A stretch of 64,000 bases of DNA from Dimorphilus gyrociliatus (taxonomy: Eukaryota; Animalia; Annelida), in NCBI GenBank assembly GCA_904063045.1, contig CAJFCJ010000001.1:3100001-3164000 (forward strand), given 5' to 3'. Made by a program: the position numbers and the translations under genes. Below are positions 6,898 through 64,000 of the stretch, one piece after another (positions within the stretch are counted from its first letter, which is position 1; every line of letters starts with the position of its first letter). A model generated the notes under the pieces. The model saw only the letters and a program-made list of their open reading frames with translations. It was not told the DNA's origin and did not search any database.

Positions 6898-8418
6898 ATG
6901 TTAAAAGTCTCTTTTGTAAAGACGGCATTTTATTTCTTTCTGCCTGGTTTCATAATATTCGGACTAACTTTTTTAATTAACTTGTCAAAGCCAGCTTACT
7001 TTCAGCATTTGGTTTCAGAAGGTGAAAGTGAACCTAACTTACGAATTGATGAAAATTTTGTTTCGTTTCGTATATGGATAACAGTGACAGTACTTGCCCT
7101 TTTCTTTGGAATTGTTTCCATCTACATCAAGTTTTTTAGATGTTTCTCATCAATGCTACTTCCCAGTCTGATATCCGCTAGAGGAAGGCTAATACTACTA
7201 ATTATCATACTTCAATTACTCTTTAACGGACCTCTAAATAATTTCCTTCGCAACTCGACAAAATTCGTTGAAATTATCGAATGTTTAATCAAATTTTCCT
7301 TATTTACTATTCAAAAAGAATTAATGAGGGGCGGAACAGATGTTCACAAGTATTCAAAAGTTTTTCAATCTTCTACTTGTAAAGGTAGCGAAGTTTTTCT
7401 CGATTTTATGAATGCTTTAAACAAGAGAATAAGTGACGACACGGGATATCAATTACCTCCGTTTGACGTTCATTTTCCATTAATTAATACAAGTTTTAGA
7501 TTAGCTCAAAAGAATCTAACAATTTACGAATTCTCCAAGAACGATACACTTTGCCCAGAGTTAACGTTTCGATATGATTTCATCAAGATATCGGCGTCAA
7601 AAGACCTCGAAGAAATAACAAGTAATTTCTCACGAGATATGATTAATGGGCTAGAGAAATTTTTATCCGTAATAAACTTTACATCTCAAATCTTTACGTT
7701 TTCAATACTCTTAATTATCGTCTTTGCAAGCTTTAGATTATATCGTTACTATACAGATTTAGAGTATAATAATGTCTATTTATCCAATGAATTCTTTAAT
7801 TTGGATAAGGAGAGAAAAAGTAAAAATCTACCATCTATCCTACCTCTTCAGCCCGAAGAGAAATCCATATATGCATCAAATCCTATTAAACCTACAGTAA
7901 AGAATATACCTTCCTTAATAATCGGTATTATTATTCTTCTAAGTATACTAATACTAGCTATCATCCTCTTTCTCTCCGATTTCTTTATGGCTAAAGTTAT
8001 AACGATAATCAATAAAGAAGCGGTAACCGATATTACAGTAACTGGTTCTATTTTAATACAAAAGGACGAAGAATTTGAGGTGATGCCAAAGAGTTTACAA
8101 GAACTATACAAGGAAATCTTTCCTATACCTTGTACGAACCCTTATAAGTATCATACAAATTTGAACTATAAAGGCGGAACTTGCCTTCCTCTACCGTCAG
8201 AGCCAGTTGTAAACAATTCAATACATTTGAGAACAATTATTATACTTTATTTGTTGCTCGTGTTAATAACGTTCTTTCATACATATGCTGAGAGAATAGA
8301 ACAGTTTACATTTGTTGCTTTCTATAAAGATAAACACAAACTAAGAGTTGAAGCTTTATACGATAACATGCTTGTAAATCGTTACTTAACACAAAAAATC
8401 GAACGAATAAAGAGATAA
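6898..8418 (+). CDS. DC-STAMP family multi-pass membrane protein (intronless, 506 aa)
   Basis: Single long ORF with several hydrophobic helices and family-type motifs ARGRLILL..GPLNNFLRN and YYTDLEYNNVYLSNEFFNLDKERK..ILPLQPEE. Confidence 0.85.
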   Translation: MLKVSFVKTAFYFFLPGFIIFGLTFLINLSKPAYFQHLVSEGESEPNLRIDENFVSFRIWITVTVLALFFGIVSIYIKFFRCFSSMLLPSLISARGRLILLIIILQLLFNGPLNNFLRNSTKFVEIIECLIKFSLFTIQKELMRGGTDVHKYSKVFQSSTCKGSEVFLDFMNALNKRISDDTGYQLPPFDVHFPLINTSFRLAQKNLTIYEFSKNDTLCPELTFRYDFIKISASKDLEEITSNFSRDMINGLEKFLSVINFTSQIFTFSILLIIVFASFRLYRYYTDLEYNNVYLSNEFFNLDKERKSKNLPSILPLQPEEKSIYASNPIKPTVKNIPSLIIGIIILLSILILAIILFLSDFFMAKVITIINKEAVTDITVTGSILIQKDEEFEVMPKSLQELYKEIFPIPCTNPYKYHTNLNYKGGTCLPLPSEPVVNNSIHLRTIIILYLLLVLITFFHTYAERIEQFTFVAFYKDKHKLRVEALYDNMLVNRYLTQKIERIKR

Positions 8419-17120: not shown

Positions 17121-18660
17121 TTATGATTTTGTAGATTCAAGCTTTAACATTTCTGTAATTCTTAAAGGTTTTACCTTATGTTTACGTTGTCGAACCCATA
17201 AAATTATTGTTTTCATGAATGCATCACTTAATTCAAAAATTGTTAAAATGGTTGCTCCAAGCATCAATCCAAAAGCTCCACCGATATCACAGAATAATGC
17301 TAATACATTATAAGCGGGATGTTCTTTCGAATCCATTGTTGTTAGTTTTGAGAAAAAAATGACCACAGTACAGTAATTGTCAAAAAGTTCTCTTTCAGAT
17401 ATTTTATGGTATTCGGCGATGGCTTGTGCGTAAAATGTACTTGCTCTTGCGTGCGTCGTGAACACTTCATATTGTACAGTTTTGCATTCCGATTTGCAAG
17501 CACAATCTTTATGCAGTTCAGTTTCCATAAATTTATCGACAGCACGTTCTGCGCATAAGATACCAATCGGGGAGCACACGCTGGCATTGGTTGTCATATA
17601 GATTTGACGACATTTACAGCTTTTGACGACAAACTGGCTAAGACAGTGTAATAAACAATATCTCCTTTTGTATGTGATGTCATCTTGGCAAGTTCCGTAC
17701 GGCGATGGTAGGGCACTTATAGACTTTTTTGTTGCCTCCATCGAGTATATTTGTCCAGGACCTATTGATAAAGATTGTTCTATCATAAGAGGGATTTCAT
17801 CTTTTTCGTGAACAAGAATCTGCAAAAAAATAACATCAAGAGATTTTCATAATGCTATTTAAACGAATAAATATGTAGAATGTACCCTATAACCAGCTCC
17901 AGGTGAATTGGGGGCTAAATATTCATCTTGATGAACAGCTAATCTCATATTTAATCCGTCATCAACTCCTACGTTTGATACTTTGGGTAAATTAGTGGCA
18001 TCGAACTGAATACACCAGCCCATGTTTGTAGCAACATATTTAAAGTATGATGAACAATTTTGTCCTTTATATAGGCACTTAAAAGATAGTTGACACTATA
18101 TGTTATATAACTGTATATTTACTATAAAATAAGAAAAGCTTACTTCTCCTACTATATCTTGCATATTAAATGATAATTCTTTGTAAATAACATTCCAATC
18201 TTCTTTAACATTCTTTATAAATGTAAGTTCTTCTTCTGTATAATTAAATACCGAAGTGTCGTCTACATAGTTCTTTATAGGGCTCCATAATTTATAAAAT
18301 ATTCCATGTAAATCTATATTTTAAGTAAGTTCTTCATTTTTTTTAAAAAAACAAACATACAAATAAAGAAAATAAAAAAATATTACTTTTTTTCACCGCT
18401 TTTGAAGAAGCAATGCGATTTTCGTTACAGATGGTAACTAATGGAAACGACAAAGAATCATGCTCTATCACTTGAATCTTTGTTACTGTATCATACTTCA
18501 TATAATATTTAATTCTATCAGTTATTTGATAGCAGAGAAACCCAGTTGAGAATAGAATTAAAGAAAACCACACTAGTCTTCTTATAGTTGACACATTCTT
18601 AGAAAGAACAATATTTAATCCAACAATAGATATGCTATCAAACAACTGAGAAATTAACAT
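17121..18660 (-). CDS. DEG/ENaC (ASIC/FaNaC-like) ion channel subunit
   Basis: Four phase-consistent exons; TM1 RRLVWFSLIL, FPLVTICNEN, Cys-rich thumb (CLLHC..CKC..C..C.C...C), TM2 DIGGAFGLMLGATILTIFEL. Confidence 0.92.
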
Positions 18661-20480: not shown

Positions 20481-20549
20481 AAAAAAAAATGAGATGAAAT
20501 TAAAATATTTTACATAATTCTAGGCAAATTAAAAAAAAAGAGTATATTC

Positions 20550-20587
<38 letters not shown>

Positions 20588-20901
20588 GTTTATAAGAACA
20601 TCCTTGGTCGTTTCTATTTTAGTTTTCTTATTATAAAACAAAACAAAATACTTAAAAAAAACACTATTTTTTCTTTTTTGTGTTAGATATTTTAAGTGCC
20701 ATTTTCTCTGTCTTTTTATTCTTCATTTTTGTACTATTTCTCATTGTTCCTTTAGTGTTAATCATTGATGGTATCATGACGGAGTTTGACAAACAAAAAT
20801 ACAAACCTTTTAATGAAAATAATTAGTGTTCTTAGTCTATTTTTATCCAGTAGCAATTGTCTTTCTTCGCTAGATTTACTGCTCTTATTATTGTTTGTTT
20901 T

Positions 20902-31475: not shown

Positions 31476-32031
31476 ATGACGACACCAGTTCAAATTTACG
31501 TAGAATTTTGGTAAGGTGTTAACTTCAATGTCTATTAATCCAAAATTATTATAAATTATTAAATATCATAATGTAGAATAATTAGAATCCGTAATCTCTG
31601 TTTATTTGCAGTGGTGCATGAGGTTATAGTTCGATCTTTCGAGATCTAAAGCAGAAAATAAAGAGAAAGGTTGAAAATGTTGAAATTGATGGAAGTGTTG
31701 GCCGTAGATGTATGAATTATATTTCTTATAATATATCTATTTTTGTTGTTGTTGCCCTATCCAATACAAGTTGTGTATAATTCTTTTTGAACACAGCTTC
31801 CTTTGAAGTAACTGTAAACAATACTTTAATATTCAGTAAGCTGAAATTAGGAGGTTTCCCTGAACATGAAAAAGTTTGTTTTATTTAATTGTCATAACGA
31901 AATACTATATATTATATATTTATTCAATATTTTCTATAAAGGTTGTCGAAGTTATTTCTAGGGTAAACCAAGGTTATCCACCGGAAGTTATTGAAGATTG
32001 CCAAAAAAGTTCATCATGCCTAATCTTATAA
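31476..32031 (+). CDS. MIEN1: Selenoprotein W2 / MIEN1-like Rdx-family protein (CxxU, C-terminal CAAX); not in the ORF track
   Basis: Exons 31476-31510, 31612-31709, 31797-31873, 31942-32031 with phases 2/1/0 matching. Product: MTTPVQIYVEFCGAUGYSSIFRDLKQKIKRKVENVEIDGSVGRRSSFEVTVNNTLIFSKLKLGGFPEHEKVVEVISRVNQGYPPEVIEDCQKSSSCLIL*. In-frame TGA at 31619-31621; SECIS downstream. Confidence 0.9.
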
Positions 32032-32121
32032 ACATTGAAAAAAGGAGCATCAACAACAACAACAACAATAACAACAACCTCTATAAACTATACAAGCCTA
32101 TTGATAGTAGAATAATATTAA

Positions 32122-32206
32122 ATCTATTGAAAAGCTATATATATGACGTAATATATTTAAACTAAGGAGGATATATTACCGATGGTTTCTTGTTTTGTCA
32201 ATAGAT
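32122..32206 (+). promoter_or_regulatory. SECIS element (selenocysteine insertion sequence) in the 3' UTR
   Basis: ATCTATTGA (32122-30) pairs with TCAATAGAT (32198-206); AUGAC (32143-47) and CGAU (32180-83) form the non-Watson-Crick quartet; GTAATATAT pairs with ATATATTAC; unpaired AAA at 32159-61. Confidence 0.88.
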
Positions 32207-33073
32207 TTATAATTATTCGAAATATAATAAACTACTGTATAATACATAAAGTAAAGGCTTATAAATAAATATATACAGTATATCTGTATTAAACCTATAT
32301 GTATTTCTAGTAGTTAAAACACTTTACTTGTTCTTTTAGAAGTATTTCTTTCATTGAATGATTTATATATAAAAGATATCGATGCTTAGATAAGCTTAAT
32401 ATAAATTTAAACCAATAGCTTTCTTCTTCTTCTCTTCCCCAACCATTTCACTTTTCTTAAGTTTTATGTATTGATATACGTTTCTATCAGAGTCTACTAT
32501 TGGCTTTTAGTATAAATAAAATGTCTAAATAAAGAATTTTTTATACTACTCAATCTATAATAGTTCCATTACCGTCCACTTTGATCGATTCTCTGCAATC
32601 TTCTACTAGTAGAGTGAGAGTATATTTTATTATTTAAAGCATCTTCTCTAATAGTATTAATATTAATGAAAGACGTAAGGAATTTAATATTTTCATATTA
32701 AAGGTTTATTTGACTCCGGAAAGGATAAAATCTATAATTACTAAGGTTTTAATCTATGTGCAAAAGGACTATTTACAAACATTATTATAGACAGATAAAA
32801 ACATTTATTATTAAATCCCATAATGCAACATATAATATAATTACACTATTATCTATAGGTATACAGAATAACATGTTAATATTTCATTGTGTATTTACAA
32901 GTTAATGTAAAAAGAGTTTAGTAGCGTTGATACTTCTCTAATAATTGTTGTCTTTGTTTTATCTTTATCTCACTTAAAGGAAAACGAAAGACTGTTACTG
33001 TTTTATTCGTTAAATATCTCTAAAAACATTATTAAAATGAAAGAATAAAAGAAATGATTTATAAGAAAGCAGA

Positions 33074-34831
33074 TTATCTCACGGAGAGTTTTACGTAAAA
33101 TTTTCCTGGATTAGTAACAAGTTCAGAGTTCCATTTTTCAGGTTCATAAGTTATTTTACTATTTTCTTCGTGATCAATAGCAACGATATTAAATTTTTGT
33201 AATAGATATACTATTATCAAAAACATACGATGATCGGCGAATTTCTTTCCAGGACAAACTCGACGTCCAGCGCCAAATGCAAAAATACTTCAATAATAAA
33301 GAAAGAATAAGATAAGATTGCAAGATAAAACTTGACTTTATATTTTAAATAACTTACTATTTTCTACATCCTTCTTGGTGTTCTAGGAGAGAGCCATCTT
33401 CTTTAAGGAATCTTTCTGGTCGAAAGTTTTGTGGATCTCCCCAAAATTTTTCATTTTTATGAACAGCGGCAACATTTACAAATATGCTAGTATCTCTCGG
33501 AATACGATAGCCCATAAGGTTCGTATCTACAACTGCTTTATGAGGTAAGAGAAGAGGAATATGACTTATCCATCTCAAAACCTCAAGAATTGTTGCTGAT
33601 GTAAAAGGCATTCTTGCCTTATCAGAATAAGTTGGAGATTTTGAAAATCCAATAACTGTCTTAATTTCTTCTAAAACCTTCTCCTTTACACCTGGATATT
33701 TGATAATTAATGCAAAAAACATTTGAAGAACTACTGTAGAAGTTTCGAAACCTTTTAAAAGAGAAAAGTAATAAGATTATGCTTAAATTTGTATTGGAAA
33801 TATTCAAGATTCGAATTAAATTACCTCCAGCTATTGTATCTAAGATAATTACAAATATTTCATCCTTATCAAGAATCTCTCCAGAGTCTCTTACAAGTGC
33901 GTTGTGGAATCCATTTTTATCCGTAGAATCTTTATTAACCTAATTAATAGTCTTTAATTTAGTATATATTCCCTGTAGATTGATATTGAACTATTTTACA
34001 TCGTATTCCTTCAATAGGTCTAACAAAATCTCATCGCGCTTATTGATTGCCTTCTTAAATTCCTTAAATTTTTTCGATTGATAAATCATTTTCATCCATG
34101 GGAGAACATTATAAATTTGTAATTCAGTATCGTATAAATATTTCACTATAATGTCGAAATAATTTCGCAATTCTTTCAATTTCTCATCTTTCAACGGTAC
34201 TCTTTGCCCAATTATCTGAAAGTCAATGAACAGGCTTTTTCATGGAATATACAGTTTACACTCTTACCATTGAAACAATTATATCAAATGTAACATTTGA
34301 AAAAAATTGTCTTAATTCAATTCTTTGACTGTTCAAGAGAATCTCATTTGAATAATCTTCAAGGATATCTAATACACTCCTTTCAACATTTAGTTCTGCT
34401 ATAGTTGTATGTTTAACATATTTCATAAACAGTTTCTTTTTGTATATTAATCTTTCGTTGAAATCTGCTAAAGCAATACCTTTTCCTCCATGAGATATCA
34501 TTGAAAGTAATTCAGTTTTTGGTCGTCCAGAAAATTCATAGCTTTTATTAATAAGAATATCGCGAATTCCATCATAATTACTTACAATCACTATCGATTC
34601 ACCAAGAAGATTTAGTTGATAGATTCCATCGTCGGAAGATTTACACCATTCCGTTAATTGTTGAATATATTTCTTAGATTCAATTGAAAATAAATGGCCA
34701 AATATTGGAATTTCGAAAGCTTTGCATTTAGGTATTTTGGTATTAGGTAAAAGATATAAAATGGCAAATATAAATATTGAGATAATTAGTATAAAACATA
34801 AAAATTCAACTAAGGATGTTAATAAATTCAT
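33074..34831 (-). CDS. Cytochrome P450, clan 2 (CYP17/21-like), copy 1, intact
   Basis: Five exons; I-helix AGGFETS, K-helix EVLR, NFRPERF, heme motif FGAGRRVCPG. Confidence 0.92.
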
Positions 34832-35094: not shown

Positions 35095-37052
35095 TTAATA
35101 ATAATATTGGTAAATAAAGGAATAGATTGCATATATAATTTGGTTCATTTTCTCGTAAGATGTATCCGACAAAGTTGTTGATACTTCGCATATCTCTTTT
35201 GTATCTGGCCAACTTTTCATTTGATCCATTATTAAAAGTTTGCTAATCTTCCCGTCTGAACAGTGAAAATCACATCTATTATGTCTGTTCACTAACGATT
35301 CATTGTTGAACTGCAATTTACATTTTATATATTTGTTTAATCCACATTTGTCATCATTCTGCTTGTATACATCCAAGTCGTTGCATAAAGACCTTGATCG
35401 ACGATTTCTAATCCAAACTCTAACTTTCATTAAACTATAAAAGATTTTCGTGATATTAATCATATTATAATTCGTTTCATAGGAACATGACTCCAAATTA
35501 TTATCAACAATTGCATCATTACTGGATAGCAAATAGTCAGGATACGATTCGCAAAGTAAATTATGAACTGACAGAGAAATAGAGTTAATCGACGAGGAAT
35601 TCCTTTATTTTGCGACGCATATTTTATGAAGAGTTAAATTATTTGTAATTTGATTAAAATAGCTTGAAAAAGTATCGTTTTCTCTACCAATACAAGAACA
35701 ATTCGTTTCGTCGTATCAGTATTTTGAATATCTAATGTAATACGATTTCTAAATGTTAGAGAAACATTCAGATTCCTTGAAAGTGTACTGGAGCATCTAA
35801 TATTAAATTTTTGATAGCAAAAAACAGCATTTAGTTTAATAGAGTTTTCTGTTGACAAATAGCCAGGTGAACTTTTTGTTTAAAAGTTGAAAATATGAAA
35901 AAAAGAAACAATGAATAAATTAATTCATTTAATAATAGAGTTAATTAATAGTAAATAAAGAAACTCATACTTTTCTCTATCCAATAACTTTGAGACTGTA
36001 CAGTGTTCTGTAGATTTTGGTTGGTATTCATTTAAACGACTATCTTTATCGGGAGCTAAATTCTCAGATATGATTCTAGCAAGTTTTTGACACTGTATCA
36101 TCTTTACTTTAGGAACGTAGGCGAAACATTTTATTTCATAAATTCCAACGAATCTCTTTTCCAGTTTATTTATTAAAAAGTTCAAATATTTGGTCTGCGT
36201 TTCAGTGGAAATAATTGTCAAATTACCATTCTTGTTCAATTGCATTTCTATGGGAGGACCTTCGTTTAGAATATTGATTGTATCTATTTCGTTTTCTTGA
36301 GGTTGATTTAAACTAATTTCTCTTATAATGTATCTTTTAAAAAATAGAACTTCAATAAATATGCCACGTTCATTTGTTGTTGATGGCTCCCACATATCGT
36401 CTTGTAAGAGTATTGAATCTTTAAAAGCAAATTTACAATTTCCACTTGACGATTTGCACGTTGAACCACTTTCTGTTCTTGCAACATCCACTAATGACGC
36501 TTCTTCAGTCCCATAGATATATACATTGCTCAATAAAGAATCGTTTGAATATTTACTCCATTCGTTGCAGGAGGAGTATACTTTGGGACTGGTGAAAATC
36601 TACCATTCTCCAATTTCCAGATTAGGATATGAAGTATTTTCGATTGTAATGTCAATACTATTTGAAAGAATAGGTTCTTTAATAGGAATATCATTCCAAC
36701 CATAAACATAATCATGAATGATTGAGAGGCTATTTTCGGATTTGATGGTAATATTCAATTTTTCTGGAAGAGATCGAAGTTTTAATATTCGAAGTCTTCT
36801 TATTTTGTTCTTATGATGATATGGAGAATTAAAATTTATATATACATTGTTGATAAGTATATCTTCTTTATTCTTATAAGATTGAATCAATCCATCATGA
36901 ACATTTCTACGTTGATGTCCCCCTACAAACTTTGAACTACTCAATAGTGGTGAAAATTCATCATCCATAAGATTTAAATAGACTTCTTCATATGCATGTA
37001 TGTATAGTGTAAAATTTAATAGATAAAAGATGACTATCGTATCAGGTAGCAT
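35095..37052 (-). pseudogene. Disabled paralog (copy B) of the secreted gene at 29102-30990
   Basis: Collinear with copy A (same phase-2 intron, DVARTESGSTC vs DVARTELGATC) but has an in-frame TAG at 36600-36602, a frameshift near 35715 and an in-frame TAA at 35605-35607. Confidence 0.8.
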
Positions 37053-46050: not shown

Positions 46051-46086
<36 letters not shown>

Positions 46087-46743
46087 ACATCTACAGTATT
46101 ATACTGTATGTCTATATATGAATATATAGAAACTATATGCGTAATTGATTATTGGATCATTTAAAAAGTAAATGTCTATGAATGTAGCATCTGTATTCTT
46201 TAATAATAATAAATAGTGTATATGTAACGACTATTAAAAAAGTAAAGAATGAACAGATGTATCTCCTTTATATATCTATTTTCTCCTCAATCTCTTTCAT
46301 TACTCTTCCTTCCTTCCTTCCTTCCTCCTTCTTCTCTTTCGTATAATACGAATATAGTAGTATTTTTAATCGTTACCAAGGATTTGTATGAAAATAAATT
46401 GTTTACTATAAAAACTTGTTACTTGTTTAATTATTAAAAGAGTTATTTATAGAATGAATTTATTATATTTAACACTTAATGGGAAAATTTGTTACCGGTT
46501 TGTTGAACGATGCAATCAACAATTGCGTATATAAATTTATCTCTAGTATTTTATTTACTGATAGTAGACCTAATATCACTTAAGTCGCTTAAAGTATTAC
46601 GAATACCGTGTATGTTTAAGAGGATGATTTAAGAGAAGTTTCCTATTTATCATAGCTTATTAAAATAGTTAAACTGTAAGAAAAGTAATTTTAATGCCAG
46701 AATAGATATATGTTTTATTTTTCTTTTCTTTTATGTTTAATAA

Positions 46744-56720: not shown

Positions 56721-58796
56721 CATGAATAGGCAATGAATATATATACCTTCTCATCTAATCTTTCGTTTATGCGTATTACGTAAATTATGCATTGTTCCAA
56801 ATAAAAAGAATTGCCTTTTTCGGCATGTGCTGCCCCCTTTTAGTCTTGTCTCTTGCCCAATTTTATTTATTTTTTCCCCTACCTACTTTAGTCAGCCATT
56901 GCGGGAAAATTTCCTTAAATCCGGTCTTTCTTAATAATAGAAGAGGGCTAAATAAATTAATTGCAGCTGTCAATCGGAAGTTTTGTTCCCTTTGTAATTA
57001 ATGACGATTAATAATAGAAACAAAAAAAAAGAGAAGAAAAGATGAAATTGCAGGAATCAGATGACAAAGGAGATGGGGAAGAAGAGGAGTGGTAGGAAGG
57101 AGGAGACGGGAGAAAAATAGGAAATAGATAATAGCAATAAAAGAGGTGAGAAGGGAATCTGAAAAGGAGCAAAGTTTACTCTTTTAATAAAAATTCTATA
57201 TCCTCAATGACATTTTAGTTTAATCAAACCAAGCAAAAAAATAGATGGTAAAAAGGGATGAAAAAGATATATAAGAGTAGTTTTTAACCAAATAAAACTA
57301 TAACGGTCCCACTGGGGGTTTTCTCTGTCACTTCTTTCTCTCCCCGCCTGCTCCCTCCCTTCCTCTTTCTATTCCTAAAAATATGTATTGACACATTCAT
57401 ATTACTCTTGTTTATCAGGTCTAGTTTGTAAATTTTTCCTTTGTCCCCAAACTAAAATTGACTAGACCAAATCTAGTTTATTTAATTTAATAAAACATTA
57501 AGCTGCTACTTCTCAACGCAAATAACATTAAATATTGACGACAGCCTTCGCGTGCGAGCTCTAGACGCGGACTTTTATTAGACGCCCCTTCTCTCTTCCT
57601 CCTTGCCCCTTTTCCTAGTATCTGATATGTAAATTTATGGAAATTAGCAGTCTTTCCCGCCATATGTAAATGACGCCATCAGGTCATCAACTCAATAAAA
57701 TACTTCTAATTGCGACGTGATGTTTGTAATATCGCCAATAGTTGGCGCTAGTTGTTCTATATAAGATACTTCGGATAGCTCAAATTAAAACACTTATACA
57801 TGAAGTTGGAATCAAATTTTACGTTACGGCTCCTACGAGTAATTCAATGATTCAGAAGCGCCGGATTATATTTTGATGAATAATGTTAGATGGGAACTAA
57901 AACAATTATATAAGCCTACATTCAAGGCGGGGAGTCGAAAAACGAGGCAGAATTAGCGATGATTAATGCGTTCGGCGCTCTAGGACAAAAAACGTTCGGC
58001 CATCTAGCGATTGTCTCGCGGGCAGCGGCGCCAAGGCGTCTAGTGTACGTTACATCAATCATGTCTGTCTTATTTCCGGGATTTACCATGATGCTTTACC
58101 ACGAAACAAAGCGTTTAAATGTTGAAAAATATGAATATAAATCCATACATAAAGTAGATTAATATATATTGTATATATATTGAATTATAGCAAATACAGT
58201 AACTATATATATATATATATAGTATATACTGTACTGTATATACAACTGTACATATATTATATATATATACAGTATATATGTATAGATAGTCTCTCTATAA
58301 CAGAATAAAGCATACATTATATGTGTTTTAAATTGCAAATATTCCATTCTTCATTAAGAATAAATTCAATTACGCAAAAAATTAGCTAATTATCGTTATT
58401 TTGCATCCTTTTAAATAAATTTATAACTGTAAATTATCATTTTTATCATGTTTAGGGTCAATTCTAAGTAATTACAATGACAATGATAGTTTTACAAGAA
58501 AGAACACAGATGCAGTATGCACAGCAAAATTAGACGGCAAGAGCTAAACAGTAATCAATTTTAAGCGAGGCTCTAGTTTGACAAGTACCGTATAACCATT
58601 TTATTGGAGAATTATATGGGCTATGATTATATAAAGCCAAATTCAAGTTGAGTTAATAATTTCACCTTGACATTTTTCATCTCCAGCACTCGTTATAAAT
58701 TTTAATATATTACTCTTAAACGCTATATTTATAACGATTTCTGTCATTTATCTTTTTATTTCCACTTCCGTCTATCCACCTATCATTCATTTTCCT

Positions 58797-62900: not shown

Positions 62901-64000
62901 GAAATACTTTAAGTAAATAGAGGCGGTACAAAGCACTTGATATTAATATCGTTTAATTACATGAATTAGAGTAATATTTTATGTTGAATGAATGAATGTT
63001 TAGGATAAATTAATAGGAAATTGTTTACTGTGCATGAATAAATCTCTTCAATTTTCTATTTTAAACTGGTTTAAGGAACAAATGACAACAACCCCGTTAA
63101 ATTGATGTAATGAAGGTCATGCGTAAAAACGCATATACTGACGAGATAAGAGAAAAAAGAGAATTGAATTAATTTATCTAAGTAGGCGTTCCTCGAATCG
63201 TAAACCGATTAGAGTGCCACTTCTATCTAACAAAGGCTTTTACAGTGAAATTGTACAGATAAGACGCAAAAAGACCGTCGTAGAAAGTGTTAGAAAGAAG
63301 AGAGAGAGAGGGAAACAGAGTCAACTTGTTAGAATGATGAAGAAGAACGGGTGACAAGGGCAGTACTACGTATAGATGTTTATTGAACAAAATGAAATAA
63401 ATGGAGATTTATAAATATATATATATAACACTGATAGACATTTCATTTAATGAACATGTTGAAGAAAAATAAAATGAGATGGAAGGCAAAGAGAGGAAAA
63501 GGAAGAAGACGGGCAAAGTCTAAGTGTAAGTTAAAAATAGGTGTATTTACACTGTATATCTTCTGCATATGTGCATCATAATATATCAATATGTATACTG
63601 TACTTACATCAACTCATTTACAGCAGTTTCTATTGTTGTTGTCCTATATTTTCTTAACTGAGTCTTTGTTAAACTAAGAAGATATTAGCAATATACAGTA
63701 TACAGTACACACCTTATGTATATAGTTAACTCTAAAATGCATGTATATATATATATATATATATATATATGTCATTTTTAAGTTGAGTTATTCGTATTAT
63801 TGATAAATACTAGTACATAATAACAATAGTAATAAGTAGAGAATATAAGAAAAAGGTTATTAATTATTCCTTTCTAAGTCATAATTAATTCTATTCATAG
63901 AGTTTTTTCTTTAATTATTGATTAAGAAATTCTTTTAGAGTTTGGAAAAACTAAAAATAAAATACTTAAAATATATAAAAGAAAGAAACGTGTAGGGAGA

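Follow-up and report, generated by a model that had tools for sequence, protein, structure and literature searches.

Downstream of a small four-exon gene on the plus strand of the Dimorphilus gyrociliatus genome (31476-32031, read from the DNA) we found a hairpin at 32119-32209 which is very probably the type I SECIS element of that gene, a SELENOW2/MIEN1-like selenoprotein gene of the Rdx family. All positions are those of the window, by which we mean the whole 64-kb stretch of DNA that was analysed. A first-pass annotation had already called the hairpin a SECIS element and had taken it as support for the recoding of UGA to selenocysteine (Sec). The identity of the element is upheld by its AUGA/GA core, the length of helix II, the spacing of the AAA, the presence of helix I, and a SECIS family that outscores all other Rfam families there. 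The argument for recoding is supported as well, with the hairpin on the right strand after an Rdx-family gene that has an in-frame TGA.

Structure of the hairpin

The 91-nt element folded with a minimum free energy (MFE) of -21.2 kcal/mol, and the fold was identical when the element was placed within the 299-nt region 3' of the stop codon. When 32110-32215 was folded by minimum free energy, both helices were recovered with z = -3.1, and 1 of 200 shuffled sequences was equally stable. The parts of the element, together with those of the gene and its 3' region, are collected in Table 1.

Helix I had been described as a 9-bp stem, and its two arms are indeed found as ATCTATTGA at 32122-32130 and TCAATAGAT at 32198-32206, inside a longer helix of 17 bp with one bulge. 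This consists of 12 contiguous pairs (32119-32130 with 32198-32209) followed by 5 inner pairs (32131-32135 with 32192-32196). Because helix I is longer than the first-pass annotation gave, the span of the element was set at 32119-32209. The distance of 90 nt from the stop codon that had been noted is correct for the shorter version, since position 32122 follows the TAA at 32029-32031 after exactly that number of nucleotides. Helix I lies below an internal loop of 7 and 8 nt, as in known SECIS elements.

Above the internal loop, the core letters ATGAC and CGAT were read at the places where they had been reported. The AUGA at 32143-32146 faces the GA at 32181-32182 across helix II, which is the arrangement for tandem G.A/A.G pairs. 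Helix II had been given as a perfect 9-bp stem extendable by U-G pairs; the arms GTAATATAT (32148-32156) and ATATATTAC (32171-32179) confirm the stem, and the extension amounts to two pairs, between 32157-58 and 32169-70. Helix II is therefore made of 11 contiguous pairs with no bulges, a length in keeping with the constrained helix II of SECIS elements. The apical AAA was also located as described. It begins 12 nt after the AUGA, stays single-stranded in the MFE fold, falls on the AAA of the Rfam model and supplies the AAR motif. Among the 28 bp of the whole hairpin, none is disrupted.

One detail of the first-pass description did not hold. The CT/AG mini-stem proposed for the apical loop comprises only 2 bp and lies 1.6 kcal/mol above the open 10-nt loop in energy. 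A type II reading, in which a C-G and a U-A pair would form this additional stem, was accordingly rejected (-4.5 versus -6.1 kcal/mol for the open loop); the pairs are absent from the MFE fold. The element was filed as type I because a mini-stem of 2 bp is energetically disfavoured. The remark that the hairpin is unusually AU-rich holds against the Rfam consensus and fails against the window (26% versus 29.5% GC), and the low GC content of the element follows that of the local genome.

Table 1. Coordinates of the selenoprotein gene, the SECIS element and the candidate poly(A) signal in the window
Feature	Positions	Strand	Basis or remark
Exon 1	31476-31510	+	Encodes MTTPVQIYVEF; its last two bases open a Cys codon
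Exon 2	31612-31709	+	Finishes Cys, then G, A, TGA (Sec) at 31619-31621, GYSSIF...
Exon 3, Rdx-family core	31797-31873	+	Pfam and PDB matches
Exon 4, coding part	31942-32031	+	Ends ...SSSCLIL, TAA at 32029-32031
Spacer between stop codon and SECIS	32032-32118	+	X2 contig covers up to 32101
Whole SECIS element, 91 nt	32119-32209	+	MFE fold, pattern scan, Rfam SECIS_1
Helix I, 5' arm	32119-32135	+	Pairs with 32192-32209, G32197 bulged; pair probabilities 0.64-1.0
Internal loop, 5' side, 7 nt	32136-32142	+	Unpaired in MFE and centroid folds
Core, 5' half, AUGA plus C	32143-32147	+	Read directly; aligns to invariant AUGA of Rfam SECIS_1
Helix II, 5' arm	32148-32158	+	9 Watson-Crick and 2 U-G pairs with 32169-32179; pair probabilities 0.77-0.99
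Apical loop, 10 nt	32159-32168	+	Opens with AAA at 32159-32161
Helix II, 3' arm	32169-32179	+	MFE fold
Core, 3' half, C-GA-U	32180-32183	+	GA aligns to invariant GA of Rfam SECIS_1
Internal loop, 3' side, 8 nt	32184-32191	+	MFE fold
Helix I, 3' arm	32192-32209	+	MFE fold
First AATAAA 3' of the hairpin, candidate poly(A) signal	32226-32231	+	Hexamer scan; weak

The selenoprotein gene

The Cys codon is split TG/T across exons 1 and 2, and the TGA in exon 2 falls in a C-G-A-U motif that follows a short hydrophobic strand. This places a CxxU redox motif after the first beta-strand, as found both in the translation and in a splice joint carried by a transcript contig. Beyond the TGA, the frame remains open and Rdx-homologous for 84 codons, across confirmed splice joints.

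The homology searches were run exon by exon and not with a joined protein. Exon 3 alone matched the Pfam Rdx family (PF10262) with 27.1 bits, above the cut-off of 22.6, and its best PDB match was human MIEN1/C17orf37 (2ljk, E = 0.0024). Exons 2 and 4, which are short and divergent, gave no significant match when searched alone. No candidate orthologue came from a word search with the frames of exon 2 (52 aa) and exon 4 (43 aa), nor did a metagenome locus search with the exon-2 frame find anything.

The protein would end in CLIL (32017-32028), which resembles a CaaX box. Human MIEN1 ends in the similar CVIL, and this C-terminus is reportedly geranylgeranylated. The likeness suggests that the worm selenoprotein may also be lipid-anchored. 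Between the stop codon and the hairpin, most of the spacer is taken up by a (CAA)n tract that a CAAT interrupts once (32051-32078), and 32037-32084 is classed as repeat; the tract may simply be an unstructured spacer.

The gene resembles the SELENOW2 / Sec-containing MIEN1 genes of fishes and invertebrates (PMC13134290) in being the same kind of host gene, with a small Rdx fold and a CxxU near the N-terminus, a comparison that covers the host gene. Invertebrate members of the SELENOW2/MIEN1 group are known selenoproteins, and every invertebrate gene in the group is assigned to the SELENOW2 branch (PMC13134290). From this statement on invertebrate genes, the worm gene would be placed in the SELENOW2 branch too. 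Annelids are known for their numerous selenoproteins; in Capitella teleta 34 have been described, of which the SelW family accounts for two (PMC3473315). The introns of the worm gene, at 68-101 nt, fit the median intron of 66 bp reported for Dimorphilus gyrociliatus (PMC7854359).

Transcription and the 3' end

Transcription of the gene was seen in two RNA runs. A 390-nt contig from run X2, with a depth of about 650, joins 31510 to 31612, 31709 to 31797 and 31873 to 31942, in each case at GT..AG, and the last of these joints was also seen in run X1, which belongs to a second study. The selenoprotein gene is real, spliced and expressed.

The X2 contig reaches 32101, falls 18 nt short of helix I and ends with neither loose letters nor an A-run. 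Further downstream, 32102-32268 carried no transcript contig and the depth was zero over 32112-32218, in a kind of data that cannot show RNA ends. A gap or a drop in depth in a contig mapping proves nothing on this point, and 3' tips of low coverage may be trimmed by de Bruijn assemblers wherever the graph branches. We consequently read the contig end as silence, neither showing nor refuting the presence of the hairpin in the mRNA, and it is by inference that we extend the mRNA through 32209. A TATAAA hexamer at 32082-32087, about 14 nt upstream of the contig end, is a possible proximal poly(A) signal, and the contig end could be either a proximal poly(A) site or a break in the assembly. On the other side of the hairpin, the AATAAA at 32226 is weak as evidence because this hexamer is common in the window (2.3 per kb).

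Perhaps, then, the SECIS is optional. Polyadenylation near 32101 would produce abundant mRNAs lacking the element, whose translation would end after 13 codons, at the UGA, and the selenoprotein would be made from a minority of long transcripts. The exact end of a high-depth contig at 32101, the empty stretch after it and the hexamer just before it all agree with this. However, the contig end carries no A-run and may be no more than a clipped tip, contigs being silent on RNA ends, and at 29.5% GC poly(A)-like hexamers such as AATAAA turn up frequently in any case. We regard an optional SECIS as unlikely. Similarly little weight is given to the proposal that the choice of 3' end gates selenoprotein output, with most polyadenylation taking place at about 32101, a position 18 nt short of the hairpin, and the SelW2-like protein made only from transcripts that use a distal site. 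If true, this would be a compact-genome case of SECIS inclusion under alternative polyadenylation.

Somewhat further downstream, a 36-nt stretch at 32269-32304 matches the middle of an otherwise unrelated X2 contig, in which the match is flanked on both sides by about 255 loose letters. The stretch probably represents a short AT-rich repeat with dispersed copies.

Statistical support and comparison with Rfam

The first-pass annotation had put forward a covariance-model search as a check of the SECIS, and the outcome was divided: SECIS_1 came out as the top Rfam family, with a score of 24.8 bits that remains under the curated gathering cut-off of 35. This match was obtained in a scan of 1.3 kb against 4227 families, covers 32134-32193 and has E = 0.039. 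Because the hypothesis had been fixed beforehand, the relevant value is that for SECIS_1 alone, about 9e-6 (0.039/4227). In the alignment, AUGA, AAA and GA all occupy invariant columns, and the bits are lost at helix I, where two pairs are non-canonical in the register of the model, at the absent helix 3, and at the C before GA.

At gathering level, an Rfam scan of the window gave no matches. When the whole window was run at E <= 10, the SECIS match was dropped by the speed filters and what was left was low-complexity, miRNA-like noise. The whole-window Rfam run was unfit as a background, and therefore our own pattern scan, with shuffles, was used instead. To be counted in this SECISearch-style scan, a site had to have ATGA, AA 10-13 nt further on and GA, with no fewer than 8 bp in helix II and no fewer than 6 bp in helix I. 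Over both strands of the 64 kb (128 kb) it returned a single match, the hairpin described here, with a helix II of 11 bp and a helix I of 12 bp. In 150 dinucleotide-preserving shuffles, loose matches occurred at 0.127 per shuffled window (128 kb), and none had the quality observed. From this shuffle rate, a loose match by chance on the right strand and within 500 nt of the stop codon is expected at about 5e-4. No other SECIS candidate came up in the 2 kb downstream when the pattern was relaxed to NTGA, with AA or CC and a tolerance of one mismatch.

These numbers bear on whether the hairpin might be an AT-rich structure that has ATGA, AAA and GA by chance, the real SECIS being elsewhere or the TGA being a true stop. 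AT-rich DNA does make many hairpins, the Rfam score is below threshold, and the orthologue searches came back empty. Against this, the shuffles never reached the quality of the observed match, the 2 kb downstream offer no competing element, and a TGA that was a true stop would leave 84 Rdx-homologous open codons behind it, across three confirmed splice joints. A chance hairpin is very improbable on this evidence. Selenoprotein genes have reportedly been lost or turned to Cys genes across many lineages. Such loss or conversion (PMC13134290) is what would lend some credit to a relic SECIS, left in a decaying gene or in one whose product ends at the UGA, but we find this scarcely tenable for a gene that is spliced and highly represented in RNA, whose exons are in frame with the CxxU motif, the Rdx core and the CaaX-like end intact, and whose hairpin has kept all of its pairs.

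Relation to known elements

The SECIS assignment, which we prefer to all of these alternatives, also agrees with the general plan of known elements. The eukaryotic type I SECIS (Rfam RF00031, SECIS_1; PMC3753652) has the same parts in the same order, from helix I up to the A's that open the apical loop, and the worm element is placed, as known SECIS elements are, 3' of the stop in a selenoprotein gene. The differences from the Rfam model are that helix II has 11 pairs in the worm and 10 in the model, that helix I begins further out, that the model's 3-bp helix 3 is missing, that the GC content of the worm element is 26-28%, and that its score does not reach the gathering cut-off.

The published consensus for the core is UGAN / KGAW, where K is G or U (PMC3753652). 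In the worm the core is UGAC / CGAU; the U fits the W position, whereas the K position is occupied by a C, which gives a C.C opposition above the A.G pair. The SECIS core is described as forming kink-turn-like tandem sheared G.A/A.G pairs (PMC3753652). With the kink-turn RNA motif the worm element would share these tandem pairs, set between a regular helix and an internal loop, its core geometry being a prediction. A plain kink-turn, in contrast, has neither a helix II of fixed length nor an apical AAR motif, and both of these are defining for a SECIS.

Proposed function

The mechanism that we propose for the element is that of the established eukaryotic Sec pathway. The hairpin would be transcribed within the 3'UTR of the selenoprotein mRNA, where its AUGA/GA core would form the kink-turn-like tandem G.A/A.G pairs and be bound by a SECIS-binding protein. 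This protein would bring the Sec-specific elongation factor with Sec-tRNA(Sec) to the ribosome, and the UGA at 31619-31621, which in the mature mRNA precedes the hairpin by about 345 nt, would then be decoded as selenocysteine. The predicted product is a 97-residue protein with a C-G-A-U redox centre. The element itself adds nothing new on Sec insertion.

Two further possibilities were considered and rejected. A Sec redefinition element in exon 2, downstream of the UGA, was looked for and the region showed no unusual fold (z = -0.95). The hairpin could also have served the convergent gene on the minus strand, a cytochrome P450 gene; the motif is present on the plus strand only.

Selenoprotein genes are routinely missed by gene predictors. 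The hairpin gives structural support for reading the TGA as Sec that is separate from the protein homology, and finding it helps to complete the selenoprotein set of this miniature annelid genome. A hairpin with all of the defining SECIS parts is evidently possible at 26% GC and yet is missed by the Rfam cut-off, which is a warning for the automated annotation of AT-rich genomes.

Neighbouring features

The convergent cytochrome P450 gene lies at 32328-34831 on the minus strand and was recognised from two open reading frames that match PF00067, one at 33357-33722 (128 bits) and the other at 34256-34831 (46.5 bits). Its introns at 32504-32572 and 33288-33357 were found in transcript contigs, and its transcript reaches at least 32328, which is 118 nt from the SECIS. 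Further open reading frames on the minus strand run to about 44031, among them one at 36600-37052 without a Pfam match.

Rfam matches to mir-297, mir-568 and mir-4536 were obtained at 46057-46122, 58194-58296, 63739-63772 and 20539-20609, all of them sub-threshold (24-37 bits, with cut-offs of 75-90). These are probably simple-sequence hairpins and not miRNA genes. Elsewhere in the window, a DC-STAMP-like open reading frame was identified on the plus strand at 6898-8418 (88.8 bits). On the minus strand, an amiloride-sensitive sodium channel (ASC family) is represented by one exon at 17121-17825 (129.8 bits).
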